Positions 40,426 to 45,632 of a stretch of DNA of 64,000 bases are shown piece after piece. How positions within the stretch are numbered: position 1 is the first letter of the stretch; the number at the start of each line of letters is the position of its first letter. The notes under the pieces were generated by a model. The model ran no database searches and was not told where the DNA came from. It saw only the letters and a program-made list of their open reading frames with translations. The DNA is from Basidiobolus meristosporus CBS 931.73 (lineage: Eukaryota > Fungi > Basidiobolomycota), in the NCBI GenBank assembly GCA_002104905.1, contig MCFE01000301.1, forward strand, positions 1 through 64,000, written 5' to 3'. The position numbers and the translations under genes were made by a program.

Positions 40426-41833
40426 ATGATTGGCCCGCTCTGTTATACTATGTATTCGTTATATTGTTCGAAGAGTCCATCGCAACAACCAAGTGTGCCT
40501 TTGAAACCAAACCAGGATTTGCCACAAGAATCGTACGATATTTATTACCAACCAGCGGACTTTGATATCAACCTACATGTCTTTTTCCTTCTAGCCCTTG
40601 AAACACATCCACTCCTTGCAAGATACCAGGCTGCGAGGCTAGAGCTTGCCGGTTATTCTTTCAACTCCCTCATACAATATGTTCCTAAAAGTACCAACAT
40701 GCAACCAGGTGGTTTGTGTGGGTTTAGTCATTACCTTAGTGTTGGGTCTACCCTCCTCCTCATTACTAGTTCGACGTGCGGGTAGGTGTGCCAGCTAGCA
40801 GCCCTCGGAATATCTTTTTAACCGGCTTACTGTAGACAACACTACCTGCGGCCCGAATATCTATTGTTTACCTCGAGCCAACGACACTTGGACGATGTCG
40901 GGTGTAGGCGTGATACGGTGGAATTCTGTATACCCCACCTTTTTGGTGCAGGGATACGTCGACATACGGCTCTACGATGTCACTGACTTGCGAAACCCCG
41001 TCCTGGTGCAGTTGAACACGACCAACGGGGACGGTTACAGGTCCCTCTATCTGGACCCAGATCTGCAGCCGCCCATATTCGCGCCGATGATGAACCGCGC
41101 AGCCAACGCTACGGTCATCAAGATATTCCGGCTGCTGATCACCGTTGCTGGAGACGATATCACTAACAAAGAGTACGGGCCATTGTTTTTCATTCAAGGT
41201 ATCGTTGTCTTGCCTTCCTTTCAAATGGGATCATTCTAGTGACCTTCTCCCAGAGCCACCCACCGCGGTCAAAGCAGTCACCGAGGCTTCCCCAGCCCCA
41301 AGCACTACCAGCATTACCCCGACCGTGACCCTCTCTTATCCAGTGATATCAACTCCCGTGCCTGCTCAAAATCCCATCCGCAACGGAAGTCAATCCCAAG
41401 GTATTTCGCCTGGTGCGATTGCCGGGATCTCCGTGGGATGTGTTGCCGTCCTGGTGGCGGCGGGAATATATCCTTTTTGCGCCGTAATTGTCCAGCATCT
41501 GTGAAATCTGACCCTTATCCTTAACTGCCCACTGCCTTGTTGTATCGCCGTAAACATCACAGGAGGTCTCGGGTCAAAGGCGCCAGTGCAAAAGGTACAT
41601 CGCGAGATGATTTTCTGGGCGGCACAGCACCGGCGGGAAAACCCCCTCGACGATTTAACTCGCTTCGTCTTACTGCCAACGATGCTCGCCTGATTGCTGA
41701 AACCTATCGAAGAATCCTACGTAAACCGAGCTGGGGAAACCCAGAGGATGAGGCAATCCAAATGAGGTCAGGTTACTCGCCCGCCTCCTCCCTTCACGAG
41801 GAGACACCTTCCAATAAGTCATGTGAACTGTAG
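40426..41833 (+). CDS. single-pass membrane protein with beta-rich ectodomain and S/T/P stalk (Mid2-like topology); 5' end uncertain
   Basis: Exons IRWNSVYPTFLVQGYVDIRLYD..YGPLFFIQ, an S/T/P-rich stalk, a TM segment GAIAGISVGCVAVLVAAG..LLY followed by RRKHHRR, and a cytoplasmic tail. Confidence 0.65.
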
Positions 41834-42035: not shown

Positions 42036-44213
42036 CTAAAACGGCACGTAGTCTAGCGCTGGTCCAACGGATTCTTGTTTGATTAGATTCTGCTGGCGTT
42101 CCAATAGCTCGTTCTCAAGGTCCTGGATACGTCGATTAAGTGCTAGGAATAGGATTGACCTGGGCAGACTAGTTGCTGTTTGCGATAGATCGATGGCCAC
42201 TAATGATGCGAACGGTTTAGCCACATGTCGTTCCAGCTTCGTCGAATATGATGATATCAGATTCATAGTTAAAGTTACTCACCAGAATTCTCGGTCATCC
42301 CACTCAGTCTTCTATTATTGAACCAACCGCGGAGTGCATGTAACGTTAAATCCATACGGTTAGCGAGCTCGATGATCTGTTGGTGGTTGGGATACGGTGT
42401 GAGTTCATAAACTTTTTCCAGCTCCGCCACAACTTCCGGGCCGAATAGTAAGAATCCATCTCTTCGGTTCTCCAATTCGGACTTGCGGTCACGACGACGA
42501 AGCTCCTTGAACCATCGCTCGATATTCTACGGGAAAGAATGTCATTGGATGCATTAATAATAAGCACCTTCGTAGTCACCTCGACAGGACCGCATACCTT
42601 GAATGTCTCATTGTACTGGTCTGCGAGGCCTTGTATCATCTCTCGAGATGGGTATTTCACTTTTTTGTGCATTTCCTCTACAGCCATATGCAGAGGGTCA
42701 TTGTACTCGCCCACTCTGGACTGCCGTTCACGAAACCAGGCATTAATCTTAAGATAATCGATCCCAAGCTGCTCAGCCAACTCTCTACGTTGAATAGAAG
42801 TGGGGTATCCATGGCACTCTTCGTAGAGCTTGCTCATTGCTTCCACAACGTGATCTGGAAACCTGGCCAGCCTGGTAGCTTTCTTGTTTCTAGGCTTGGT
42901 ACTCTTTTCCGTAAGTTGTCTCTTTTCTGGAACAATCTTCGGATGCGGATTCGATGGGTGTTGATAAACATCAATCCCTCTATCTCGATCTTCAGCACGA
43001 CGCTTATAAAACCAGTGCAATACTGACTAATACAGAGATTAGTCCAGTGCACTCTCGTATTCACGCACATGTATGTATTCTACCTTTTCACTTCGTTTCA
43101 AGTGCTCTGCAAGCTCCTTTAACTGCTCAGGGCTAGGAAACGGCGTTTGTTCGTAATAGTCGTGCAGCGTTTGTATTGCTTCCGGAGTATATTTGACTAA
43201 TAAAGGCTTGATCTCGATGCCATTGCTTCTGTCACGATCGCGCCGCTTGGAAAACCAGCGCTTGATTCTCTGAATTCAGCAGCATAGTTAGAATCTTGAA
43301 TCGTTCGCCAACTCAATGCAAACACCAACCCGTAAAGTAACGTTGTTTTCGCTAGCAATTTGCTCCATCACCGGAACTGGTGGGTAGACAGTCTCTGCAT
43401 AGACTTTTTCACACGACTCCTCGAGTTTCTCCAAGTCGCATGCTGGAGCACTGCAAACTACTGGAGAAATGATTTCCGCACCTTTCTGACGTAACTGGTT
43501 TCGTCTATTCGTAAACCACAAGATGATTTTCTGAACACATTCGAGTAGGTTTAGACAGGTGTGTCGGTTTGTAAAACAGATGGGTTGAAGAAATCACATC
43601 CTACCTTTCTATCCACCCCCAGCTTGTGAGCAAGCCGTGTATAGTCTTGTGTTGAATGGTATTTACTCTGTTGGAAGATGGGTTCGAGGTAAAAGGCAAG
43701 AGAGGATTTTTTGCTGGTATCAATGGGTTCGTGATAGGAGGGAGTCAAGTAATCGACGCGTTGTTTGGTTTTTGAGTAATACAGTTTCCAAAAATCTCGC
43801 ACTACTTTCGGGTCTATGTCTATCTCTTTGGCAACCGCCGTCAGTTGCTCGTCAGTGGGGGAAGCGGTGGCCAAAATGAAGGCTCGAATTTTTTCCACCG
43901 CACCAGAACTCAGGTATTTTTCATCGTTCCTAGCGGCCTTCCTTCGTCGGTTTCTGAACCAGCTTCTTGTGGGCTTAAGGAAAAGTCAGTAAGTGACGGT
44001 ACTGTAAACGCAGTGTCGGCCGACTGGTGCATATACCTCCTGTTCTATGGAGCAATCCTCGCAGACCACACTGTATTCATATTGACTGGGGTATGGGTTG
44101 CAACTGTAGTACTCTTCTAGACGTTCCCGTAAATCTCGGTCCAAGTGACGCGTGATGGAGTTTTTGGCAGTTTTTTTTTGTGCTTCGGGGCTGACTTCTG
44201 CTTCAGAAGGCAT
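42036..44213 (-). CDS. multi-homeodomain protein (8 tandem homeodomains + C-terminal coiled coil, ~570 aa)
   Basis: Introns at 43974-44036, 43531-43604, 43270-43329, 43027-43083, 42527-42597 and 42143-42282 give a continuous frame. Helix-3 signatures are WFRNRR, FWKLYY (degenerate), WFTNRR, WFSKRR, WFYKRR, WFRERQ, WFKELR and WFNNRR, most preceded by an (Y/F/S)P-type loop (YH in HD3) and L-x(3)-Y/F helix-1 patterns. Confidence 0.9.
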
Positions 44214-44875
44214 TCTATAATTTGGTTAAAAGAGATATACTCGATCCATTTAATCTATTCCGATTCCTGGAGCACACGTTCCTTTTTTTTCTTTTTTCTA
44301 CCGATTTTTCTGAACATATTTGATGACTGTGATTTGGAACGGGGCGGTCCTAAGCCTCAGGTGTGAATGTGTGCCATGGCAATTCTGTGGAATCGAACAT
44401 AATGCCATCTTACAGGTTCACTTGAGATAAGCTGATGTAGTGGGTGGTTACATGTGTGGAAGATTTAAGTGATTGTTTAGCTGATGCGTTTGATTTCCTT
44501 TGTACTTCATATTACAACTGCTATGCGTTCCAACATTCTGTGGTGGCACGTGGTGATATAATCCAGTACTATTCTAATTATATGCTAGACCGAGCTGGGG
44601 AATCATGTCCCCCCTGCTCTCTCCTTTCATTCTCCCCCTTGTTTGATCCCGGCAAAGCAATCAATATGCCAATTCTACAGCTTCATTGCTGCGCTTTCTG
44701 GTTCCTTTCTATTGCTGGGTTATCCTCCTTCCACGTTCCTAAAACATCCACCTCGTCACCGCATTTTTTGCTTTTGGTTTCCCGCTAAGCATTCTACCCT
44801 CGACTTGTTCAGACTCCACGAAAGCAACGCTTCAGTAATATTCACTGCTTGGTCAGCTGTTCGACATTTATTATC

Positions 44876-45632
44876 ATGCGTGAATATAAATTGGTGGTTC
44901 TTGGCTCTGGTGGTGTTGGTAAATCCGCATTGGTAAGCGTCGGGACCAACTTTTCCTCCGTTGAATACCATGCGGGCCCTGCTGAAGATGGTTTACTTAC
45001 GGCTTATCGTTTGTCAAACACTTATCTAGACCGTCCAATTTGTACAATCAATATTCGTTGAGAAATACGACCCGACTATCGAGGATTCTTACCGAAAGCA
45101 GGTAGAAGTGGACGGACAGCAATGCATGTTGGAGATTTTGGATACTGCTGGTACAGAGCAGTTTACCGCCATGCGAGATCTTTACATGAAGAACGGGCAA
45201 GGCTTTGTGCTGGTTTATTCCATCACCTCTATGGCCACTTTCAATGACTTGGCCGAGCTACGGGAGCAAATTGTTCGAGTAAAAGACACTGAGCAGGTAA
45301 GCCGAATGAGCTACTCTTATCCCAACCACCGTAGCTACCATATTTGGAAGCCACTCGCCACCTATAGTATATCCAATTAATGTAGCTTTTGTGGTTGGAT
45401 CTAGGTTCCTACAGTGCTGGTTGGAAATAAATCCGACCTGGAGGATGATAGATGTGTTTCTCGCGAGGTTGGCGCCGAGTTGACACAACACTGGCCAGGG
45501 GCCACTTTCTTCGAGACATCCGCCCGTAAAAGAATCAATGTTGATGAGGCGATTTTTGACCTGGTGCGACAAATTAACCGCCAAAATCCTGGGCGCTCGG
45601 ATAAGCGTAAAAAGAAGTGCATTATTCTTTAG
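44876..45632 (+). CDS. RAP1: Ras-family GTPase Rap1 (Rsr1/Bud1 orthology group)
   Basis: [73 protein letters not shown], and the CAAX box CIIL. Confidence 0.97.

Follow-up and report, generated by a model that had tools for sequence, protein, structure and literature searches.

Homeodomains nearly always work singly, and a locus on the minus strand of the window, the 64,000 nucleotides at the start of contig MCFE01000301.1 of Basidiobolus meristosporus CBS 931.73, raises the question whether eight of them can belong to one fungal protein and what such a protein would do. Splicing gives a single open reading frame of 589 residues, from the ATG at 44213 to the stop at 42036, slightly longer than the frame of ~570 residues proposed earlier from the DNA letters alone (the sequence-only reading). 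The ATG is the earliest in-frame start downstream of a stop, and all six introns of the spliced model are of the GT-AG type (63, 74, 60, 57, 71, and 83 nt). The gene is K493DRAFT_303721 (P0121), which public annotation describes only as hypothetical or homeobox-containing. The spliced model and the public protein are identical except for five residues at intron 4, where the public donor sits 15 nt further in and adds VEYIH. A diverging Ras-family GTPase gene lies on one side and a converging gene on the other, which leaves no room for separate genes. The features of the coding region are collected in Table 1.

Table 1. Coordinates in the window of the coding region, exons, introns, and protein segments of the eight-homeodomain (HD) gene
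Feature	Coordinates	Strand	Residues (aa)	Remarks
Whole coding region	42036..44213	-	589 in total	7 exons, 6 introns; stop at 42036-42038
Exon 1	44037..44213	-		N-terminus and helices 1-2 of HD1; exon 1/2 junction seen in X3 contig
Exon 2	43605..43973	-		HD1 helix 3, whole HD2, HD3 helices 1-2
Exon 3	43330..43530	-		HD3 helix 3, HD4 helices 1-2
Exon 4	43084..43269	-		HD4 helix 3, HD5 helices 1-2
Exon 5	42598..43026	-		HD5 helix 3, basic linker, whole HD6, HD7 helices 1-2
Exon 6	42283..42526	-		HD7 helix 3, whole HD8
Exon 7	42036..42199	-		C-terminal tail: amphipathic helix and stop; conserved in B. ranarum
Intron 1	43974..44036	-		63 nt, phase 0, HD1 positions 43/44; precisely skipped in X3 record 6; same position and phase in B. 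ranarum
Intron 2	43531..43604	-		74 nt, phase 0, HD3 positions 43/44; precisely skipped in X3; kept in B. ranarum
Intron 3	43270..43329	-		60 nt, phase 0, HD4 positions 43/44; precisely skipped in X3; kept in B. ranarum
Intron 4 (predicted)	43027..43083	-		57 nt, phase 0, HD5 positions 43/44; retained in X3 contig
Intron 5	42527..42597	-		71 nt, phase 0, HD7 positions 43/44; precisely skipped in X3; kept in B. ranarum
Intron 6	42200..42282	-		83 nt, phase 1; spliced and unspliced forms in X3; position and phase kept in B. ranarum
HD1	43923..44165	-	17-76	WFRNRR, Asn51 kept; Pfam 32.8 bits
HD2	43755..43934	-	73-132	FWKLYY; intronless, divergent; Pfam: none
HD3	43480..43733	-	140-199	WFTNRR, Asn51 kept; Pfam 39.0 bits
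HD4	43219..43458	-	207-266	WFSKRR, Lys51; Pfam 29.8 bits
HD5	42976..43212	-	269-328	WFYKRR, Lys51; Pfam 40.2 bits on the ortholog's unit
Linker	42883..42975	-	329-359	31 residues, sole true linker; basic (KSTKPRNKK...)
HD6	42700..42882	-	360-420	WFRERQ, Glu51; one additional loop-1 residue; intronless; Pfam 32.7 bits
HD7	42476..42726	-	412-471	WFKELR, Glu51; Pfam 24.3 bits
HD8	42287..42466	-	475-534	WFNNRR, Asn51 kept; intronless; Pfam 44.7 bits
C-terminal amphipathic helix	42072..42161	-	~549-578	From AlphaFold and heptad count

The splicing pattern was examined in run X3, which carries a guessed 'DNA?' label and was taken as a transcriptome because it is small and contains a spliced contig. 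A contig of 1771 nt begins 108 nt upstream of the ATG and reaches the end of exon 6, joining HD1 to HD8 in one transcript. The possibility that the segments belong to separate genes, raised with the sequence-only reading, was not seen in this contig, which spans exons 1-6. Of the six introns proposed there, 1, 2, 3, and 5 are removed exactly and intron 6 occurs both spliced and retained, whereas intron 4 is retained. The predicted intron 4 contains an in-frame TAA, and an intron stands at the same position in Basidiobolus ranarum. The stretch also evolves as an intron, since the copy in X4 carries four indels within it (net +5 nt); the same copy has a 4-nt deletion within intron 2. If intron 4 were never spliced the protein would end after HD4, and the conservation of HD5-HD8 argues against this, short of proof. 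An unspliced intron 6 gives a predicted protein end of ...ENSGE* without the C-terminal helix.

The B. ranarum ortholog (P0001) is syntenic, 588 residues long, and 73% identical, and it retains the gene neighbourhood and the position and phase of every one of the six introns; its matching seven-exon structure comes from an independent annotation. Between the two species dN is 0.17 and dS is saturated overall. With this saturation dN/dS is numeric for few units only, and selection was judged by dN, the placement of indels, and the closer X4 copy. The latter is ~88% identical, with all eight indels inside introns (19% of the length) and with 26 of the 29 listed exonic substitutions synonymous (16 of 18 listed in exon 6 and 8 of 9 listed in exon 7). 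Both species share the same helix-3 hexamers save for K/Q in HD2, the least conserved unit with 54% identity to its ortholog. Identity between the species is higher for HD4-7 (84%) than for HD1/3/8 (74%; Fisher p = 0.013). These patterns of substitution indicate that the gene is under purifying selection. We conclude that the gene is real and that it is a single gene encoding a single protein made almost wholly of homeodomain folds.

The units were scored one by one against the Pfam Homeodomain profile (PF00046, gathering cut-off 22.9 bits), using as queries the exon pieces, the public model P0121, and the B. ranarum ortholog P0001. Seven of the eight units lie above the cut-off singly, HD2 being the exception. 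The N-terminal part of HD5 alone, from this sequence, yielded 26.7 bits, and HD6 scored within the exon 5 piece reached 44.7 bits. The ortholog contains seven Pfam homeodomain stretches with a total of 193.9 bits. P0001 and all pieces of P0121 contained only homeodomain-type Pfam families, with zf-C2H2 absent. The WF-to-WF spacings are 56, 67, 67, 62, 92, 51, and 63 residues, and the N-terminal arm of HD7 overlaps the end of HD6. In the AlphaFold model of the full length, eight three-helix units stand out with a pLDDT of 85-95, at a pTM of 0.27. In the model of the ortholog the basic linker has a pLDDT <50; its composition makes it a candidate nuclear localisation signal.

HD2 of either species gave no Pfam Homeodomain match at E <= 1, and against a profile of the other units it aligned in register with a weak score (hhalign P = 7.9e-4, probability 25%). 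With only the two orthologous rows as input, AlphaFold gave a model with a core pLDDT of 79-87 and helices at 13-25, 31-40, and 45-56. The best 50 Foldseek matches of this model in the PDB are all homeodomains, with TM scores of 0.56-0.70 by query and 0.31-0.81 by target, and for most an rmsd of ~2 Å over 50-55 residues. Their E-values are weak (best 0.065), as is usual for domains this small. Among them are ZHX1 HD4, ATBF1 homeodomains, and the HD-ZIP structure 9lpe. Thus, HD2 is predicted to fold as a homeodomain despite the Pfam failure, and the count is eight homeodomain folds, seven by sequence and one by predicted structure, in agreement with the eight back-to-back homeodomains first proposed.

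The heptad segment LNRRIQDLENELLERQQNL, which had been noticed after the homeodomains, is encoded in the last exon, the exon of the C-terminal amphipathic helix. The heptad core of this helix reads F-L-I-L-L-R-L, ~3.5 heptads, and AlphaFold places the helix of the ortholog at residues 551-580 with a moderate pLDDT of 63-78.

Asn51 is the base-reading residue of homeodomains, and by this textbook criterion the array would divide into three readers and five non-readers. The set of Trp48, Phe49, Asn51, and Arg53 is complete only in HD1, HD3, and HD8, and the pattern is the same in B. ranarum. In the other units residue 51 is Leu (HD2), Lys (HD4 and HD5), or Glu (HD6 and HD7); HD2 additionally has WF swapped to FW and has lost Arg53, and HD6 carries Gln53. 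The sequence-only reading had listed all eight hexamers of positions 48-53 exactly, had restricted Asn51 to the same three units, and had given position 50 of the seven WF units as R, T, S, Y, R, K, and N, all of which the spliced protein bears out. The N-terminal arms contain at most two basic residues among the first nine in all eight units, and none in HD4. Judged from sequence, none of the units thus appears to have the basic arm (Arg3/Arg5) of minor-groove contacts, making strong binding to DNA less likely, even for HD1, HD3, and HD8. Helix 3 of HD4, HD5, and HD7 is still very basic, and the Lys51 units might contact DNA in an unusual manner.

The best explanation, which we regard as probable, is a genuine, transcribed, Basidiobolus-only gene under purifying selection that encodes a nuclear multi-homeodomain protein, formed by old internal duplication, with HD1, HD3, and HD8 reading DNA and the other units not. 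Repeated duplication of a homeobox unit within the gene is the probable source of the array; a phase-0 intron interrupts five of the eight units at one shared site, homeodomain positions 43/44. The duplications would be old, because identity between units has fallen to 8-27%. The eight three-helix domains would act as beads on a string, end to end and almost free of linkers. HD1, HD3, and HD8 probably contact DNA via helix 3 and probably prefer different sites, since position 50 differs between them (Arg, Thr, and Asn). HD2 and HD4-HD7 probably act as spacers, as surfaces for protein contacts, or in non-specific backbone binding, and not as base readers. Two chains may pair through the C-terminal helix, which a form with intron 6 retained would lack, and retention of intron 4 would lead to a truncation with four homeodomains.

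Alternatively, the protein could be mainly a protein-protein scaffold or cofactor in which homeodomain folds have come to serve for interaction, a role reported of certain ZHX and Homez homeodomains. Such a role would suit the poorly basic N-terminal arms, the better conservation of the units without Asn51, and the presence of ZHX1 HD4 and ATBF1 homeodomains among the structural matches of HD2. However, HD1, HD3, and HD8 keep Trp48, Phe49, Asn51, and Arg53 in both species, which would be needless if nothing read DNA, and we consider the scaffold unlikely.

The sequence-only reading had suggested a modular long-site reader, in which all eight homeodomains recognise one composite site module by module in the manner of a zinc-finger array, and this proved its weakest part. 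The units are packed head to tail (WF-to-WF 51-67 residues apart from the one linker), position 50, different in every unit, is conserved across both species, the helices 3 of HD4, HD5, and HD7 are very basic, and the best structural matches, DUX4 and engineered tandem engrailed homeodomains, bind adjacent sites. Nevertheless, a DNA reader of eight modules is quite unlikely because five of the eight units are without Asn51. Two of these have Glu, expected to repel DNA, and HD2 lacks Arg53 besides its inverted WF; moreover, no unit has an arm with more than two basic residues in the first nine, and the pTM of 0.27 gives no fixed geometry between the domains.

A decidedly speculative reading is a molecular ruler, in which HD1, HD3, and HD8 would be spaced at fixed distances by the five conserved Asn51-less folds and doubled by the helix, so as to read dispersed half-sites or bridge DNA segments, with regulated retention of intron 4 or intron 6 switching its reach. 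If true, homeodomain folds would serve as structural spacers, a use so far undescribed. Finally, an artefact, whether from an incorrect gene model, from fused neighbouring genes, or from a decaying repeat without full translation, is largely refuted and highly improbable: the retained intron 4 with its stop in the sole transcript contig, the disagreement of the public and present models on its donor, and a search for RNA-labelled public runs that listed none would fit it, but five of the six introns lie inside homeodomains so that the exons cannot be stand-alone genes, exons 1-6 are joined in one contig, the exons past intron 4 are free of indels, show mostly synonymous change, and are the most conserved against B. 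ranarum, and the seven-exon structure of that species was annotated independently.

The preferred reading of a Basidiobolus-only gene draws on database searches. Single-protein and two-row profile searches of 5.8 billion proteins, in which only the 8000 candidates sharing most words were scored and distant ones may be missed, found no full-length relative outside Basidiobolus, and the gene is seemingly confined to this genus. The nearest match outside it is P0002, a protein of 317 residues with 4-5 homeodomains (E 4.6e-20) on a 3.2-kb metagenome contig. The literature searched contained no fungal or Basidiobolus protein of comparable multi-homeodomain build, in line with the sequence-only reading, which knew of no described fungal example. 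Its statement that fungal homeobox proteins carry one homeodomain needs correction. A local model detected eight proteins with three, seven of them named Agaricomycete proteins (from Paxillus, Serpula, Wolfiporia, Suillus, Dentipellis, and Coprinopsis) and one unnamed, and Pfam confirmed three homeodomain stretches in the Paxillus protein P0014. The Agaricomycete units are separated by linkers of ~50-170 residues, in contrast to the eight packed units of Basidiobolus, and these proteins have no detectable full-length relationship to it.

The notion that known arrays end near five homeodomains, accompanied by zinc fingers, likewise does not hold, as 12 homeodomains lie tightly packed in Caenorhabditis elegans CEH-100 (PMC4448998, PMC4901127). 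By Pfam, proteins of Caenorhabditis nigoni and unnamed metagenome proteins contain 8-16 homeodomains, and C. nigoni P0017 contains 10. By the local model only, proteins of the nematode Heterodera and the insects Timema and Phymastichus have 7-9, and C. nigoni P0011 and Heterodera trifolii P0054 have 7 each. In build, though not as a clade, the Basidiobolus protein is of the CEH-100 type, a pure array of packed homeodomains with little or no linker and no other domain, the C-terminal helix being its sole element of another kind. Many divergent units are a further trait in common with CEH-100, its relative CEH-99, and the similar multi-homeodomain proteins of C. nigoni and H. trifolii. Some units of the CEH-100 type are shorter than 60 residues (PMC4448998), for which the Basidiobolus counterpart is HD7 starting inside the end of HD6. 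The origin of the Basidiobolus array is independent and fungal, without orthology to the nematode genes, and the likeness is confined to single homeodomains; nematode matches to a 143-residue piece have E 1e-8 or weaker at 27-28% identity. Whereas the nematode arrays evolve fast, the Basidiobolus protein has persisted in two species whose synonymous sites are saturated, with introns and neighbours unchanged, and it adds a conserved C-terminal amphipathic helix. As far as the searches reached, the architecture is new for a fungus, and packed homeodomain-only arrays as such have already been described in CEH-100.

Several homeodomains in one chain are likewise found in ZHX1-3, Homez, and ZFHX3/ATBF1, and some of these serve dimerisation and not DNA reading. 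These vertebrate proteins have long linkers and, Homez excepted, C2H2 zinc fingers, in contrast to the Basidiobolus protein with no zinc finger and almost no linkers. The number of homeodomains per chain is 4-5 in Zhx proteins (PMC7144352). The best solved-structure match to the HD3-HD4 pair is human DUX4 (phmmer E 1.4e-5, residues 157-266; Foldseek ranks 1-6), in which two tandem homeodomains, both with canonical DNA-reading residues, occupy adjacent DNA sites. With a TM of 0.36-0.39 by target this is a weak match, one that stems from two homeodomain folds standing side by side and not from shared geometry. In plant HD-ZIP proteins a homeodomain is followed by a leucine-rich amphipathic helix able to dimerise, an order similar to that of the Basidiobolus protein. 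The HD-ZIP zipper, however, abuts a single homeodomain, whereas the Basidiobolus helix of ~3.5 heptads begins ~15 residues past HD8, and no sequence relationship to HD-ZIP proteins was seen.

Even for ZHX and CEH-100, little is understood of what the additional units of a multi-homeodomain protein do. The Basidiobolus protein offers a useful natural case, being compact (589 residues), conserved between species, and fixed in its three canonical and five Asn51-less units, and the purpose of degenerate homeodomains becomes testable in it by unit-by-unit mutation. With eight homeodomains it exceeds the previous maximum found in fungal proteins, which was three. No new principle is implied, as arrays of 8-16 homeodomains are already present in public protein collections and one, CEH-100, is described in the literature.

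Two further readings of the locus were rejected. A mating-type locus does not agree with the neighbours, which are a RING-BRCT gene, a Ras GTPase, a Psg1-like gene, and an ATPase subunit, presumably none of them among the flankers of zygomycete sex loci. An animal origin by horizontal transfer was discarded in view of the short introns, with CTRAY-like branch motifs like those elsewhere in the gene, and the conserved synteny; the high rank of animal matches comes solely from the summing of several homeodomains in one score.

From 44213 down to 42036, each open-frame fragment of the minus strand stops within a homeodomain, and splicing of six short GT-AG introns joins the fragments into a single frame of 1770 nt encoding 589 aa, much as a sequence-only reading had proposed with an estimate of ~570 aa. 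The ATG at 44213 is the earliest in-frame start following a stop. Introns 1-5 are in phase 0 and occupy a common position between homeodomain positions 43 and 44 (numbered with Trp as 48) in HD1, HD3, HD4, HD5 and HD7, the eight homeodomains being numbered from the N terminus, and intron 6 is in phase 1, 3' of HD8. The locus is bounded on one side by a diverging Ras-family GTPase gene and on the other by a converging gene. The GTPase (motifs DTAGTEQF and NKSDL, C-terminal CIIL) looks like Rap1/Rsr1 and is syntenic in Basidiobolus ranarum (Pfam Ras in L001). An exon-7 contig from the public sequencing run X3 extends ~1.27 kb past 42036, to ~40.8 kb, and the 3' ends of the homeobox gene and its converging neighbour may overlap.

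Features of the homeobox locus and single-unit Pfam Homeodomain scores
Feature	Position	Strand	Detail
Homeobox gene	44213-42036	minus	seven exons
Intron 1	43974-44036	minus	63 nt
Intron 2	43531-43604	minus	74 nt
Intron 3	43270-43329	minus	60 nt
Intron 4	43027-43083	minus	57 nt
Intron 5	42527-42597	minus	71 nt
Intron 6	42200-42282	minus	83 nt
Upstream neighbour	~44850-45632	plus, diverging	Ras-family small GTPase gene, several introns
Downstream neighbour	41145-41833	plus, converging	end 41833; predicted membrane segment
HD1		minus	32.8 bits
HD2		minus	no Pfam match, either Basidiobolus species
HD3		minus	39.0 bits
HD4		minus	29.8 bits
HD5		minus	40.2 bits (unit from ortholog)
HD6		minus	32.7 bits
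HD7		minus	24.3 bits
HD8		minus	44.7 bits

A search of 1.84 billion representative proteins with a 143-aa exon returned P0001 (KAK9729639.1, B. ranarum, 588 aa, E 3.8e-77), which as a query led to P0121, the public model K493DRAFT_303721 of Basidiobolus meristosporus CBS 931.73 (594 aa). Neither has a public name more specific than 'hypothetical protein' or 'Homeobox domain-containing protein'. P0121 is letter-identical to the spliced model except for five additional residues, VEYIH, which are added to HD5 by an intron 4 donor (GTGCGT) placed 15 nt deeper in the intron. The donor of the 589-aa model is the more likely one, because it leaves HD5 with the canonical 12 residues from 'LA' to 'WF' and because the B. 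ranarum model agrees, without the insertion.

A search for runs labelled RNA returned none. Run X3, which shares its study with the genome run, comprises only 27 million letters and is labelled, as a guess, 'DNA?'. One X3 contig of 1771 nt begins 108 nt upstream of the ATG, reaches the end of exon 6 and precisely omits introns 1, 2, 3 and 5, and intron 6 occurs both in a spliced piece (depth 82) and in an unspliced piece (depth 90). The run was read as a transcriptome; a processed DNA copy would leave the mixed intron 6 unexplained. The contig and the intron 6 pieces thus place HD1-HD8 on one RNA and confirm five of the six predicted introns, the exception being intron 4, which contains an in-frame TAA and is kept in this contig, the only transcript contig. 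Position 43042, within the likely intron 4 branch motif gaCTAAT, is C>T on the sense strand in the X3 allele and in a further copy from run X4, compared with the window, and this substitution may bear on the retention. If intron 6 were retained, the protein would end in ...ENSGE*, without the C-terminal helix; the mixed forms may represent an isoform switch or merely unprocessed RNA.

Scored singly, seven of the eight units lie above the 22.9-bit gathering threshold of Pfam Homeodomain, and the full ortholog P0001 yields 193.9 bits over 7 Pfam stretches. The remaining unit, HD2 (FWKLYY), aligned in register but weakly with a profile of its sister units (hhalign P = 7.9e-4). AlphaFold, run on the full-length ortholog, places HD2 among eight three-helix units with pLDDT 85-95, and a model of HD2 only, with two HD2 orthologs as the sole alignment rows, gave a core pLDDT of 79-87. 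The best 50 Foldseek matches of the latter in the PDB were all homeodomains, mostly at rmsd ~2 Å and with weak E values (E >= 0.065). The homeodomain count from the Pfam and AlphaFold checks is eight, as originally proposed, with HD2 recognisable from predicted structure only; re-examination also reproduced exactly the helix-3 motifs, the distribution of Asn51 and the position-50 residues reported earlier. The full-length model, with a pTM of 0.27, predicts no inter-domain arrangement, and among solved structures it matches best the double homeodomain of DUX4, tandem engrailed and POU proteins.

In homeodomains, Asn51 is the invariant adenine contact and position 50 tunes specificity, and Arg53, like Trp48/Phe49, has a structural or backbone-contact role. 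Position 51 is Glu in HD6 and HD7, Lys in HD4 and HD5, and Leu in HD2, which also has Tyr at position 53. The Asn51-bearing units carry Arg50 (HD1), Thr50 (HD3) and Asn50 (HD8), and the N-terminal arms of all eight units have at most two basic residues within the first nine. By the textbook Asn51/Arg53/Trp48/Phe49 criteria, only HD1, HD3 and HD8 look able to read bases. The sequence-only interpretation holds as far as the single eight-homeodomain protein is concerned, but its eight-module reader of one long DNA site is less likely and is not favoured by the residues, five of the eight units lacking Asn51. Judged from these residues, a protein with three putative reading heads (HD1, HD3 and HD8) is favoured, in which the other five homeodomain folds, conserved but probably non-reading, would serve as spacers or contact surfaces. 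The C-terminal amphipathic helix is short (heptad core F-L-I-L-L-R-L; predicted helix 551-580, pLDDT 63-78) and may pair chains.

The B. ranarum gene likewise has seven exons, with all six introns at matching codons and phases, and matching neighbours (a RING-BRCT gene, the Ras GTPase and a Psg1-like gene). The two proteins are 73% identical (dN 0.17, dS saturated overall), and their helix-3 hexamers are the same except for K/Q in HD2. Interspecies identity is higher in HD4-HD7, which lack Asn51, than in the canonical HD1, HD3 and HD8 (84% against 74%; Fisher p = 0.013), and is lowest in HD2 (54%). The third copy, on a 64.6-kb contig of X4, a public run brought in by the species label common to the genome run, has ~88% DNA identity over 42070-44213 of the window; it may stem from another strain or species, or be a diverged second copy within one genome. 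Its 8 indels all fall within introns 2, 3, 4 and 6, although only 19% of the compared stretch is intronic; the chance of this is ~1.5e-6 if indels are assumed independent. Synonymous changes account for 26 of the 29 exonic substitutions listed (215 more lie beyond the list), among them 8 of the 9 in the last exon, so this exon does code in the frame predicted.

Zhx proteins combine zinc fingers with four or five homeodomains (PMC7144352). The representative-protein search returned many matches with multiple aligned stretches, and Pfam counted 16 homeodomains in P0006 (1666 aa, ENA), 12 in P0033 (1300 aa, JGI metagenome), 10 in P0017 (Caenorhabditis nigoni), 8 each in P0007 and P0059, and 6 in P0003. 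A local homeodomain model found 7-9 in Heterodera, Timema and Phymastichus proteins, and three in seven Agaricomycete proteins of 550-680 aa (P0014, P0024, P0027, P0035, P0037, P0039 and P0043) with linkers of roughly 50-170 residues; Pfam bears out the three in P0014 from Paxillus. The architecture is thus known and arises repeatedly, and the earlier suppositions that animal arrays reach about five homeodomains, together with zinc fingers, and that fungal homeobox proteins characteristically carry one are not supported. New here is the eight-homeodomain case in a fungus; no description of a fungal or Basidiobolus example turned up in literature searches, in keeping with the initial impression. 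Among 5.8 billion proteins, of which the 8000 candidates sharing most words were scored, the full-length searches found only the B. ranarum and B. meristosporus proteins themselves, so the protein appears confined to this genus. Unlike the nematode arrays, the Basidiobolus array is stably conserved.

With its 16, P0006 surpasses CEH-100 of C. elegans, whose 12 tightly packed homeodomains are the published record (PMC4448998, PMC4901127). The 374-aa protein P0003/P0115, with six packed homeodomains, is encoded on metagenome contigs reaching 90.6 kb; one source calls it an 'XRE-family HTH transcriptional regulator'. An Atlas cluster related to the Agaricomycete family, mostly Basidiomycota, also matches the HOCHOB double-homeodomain model.
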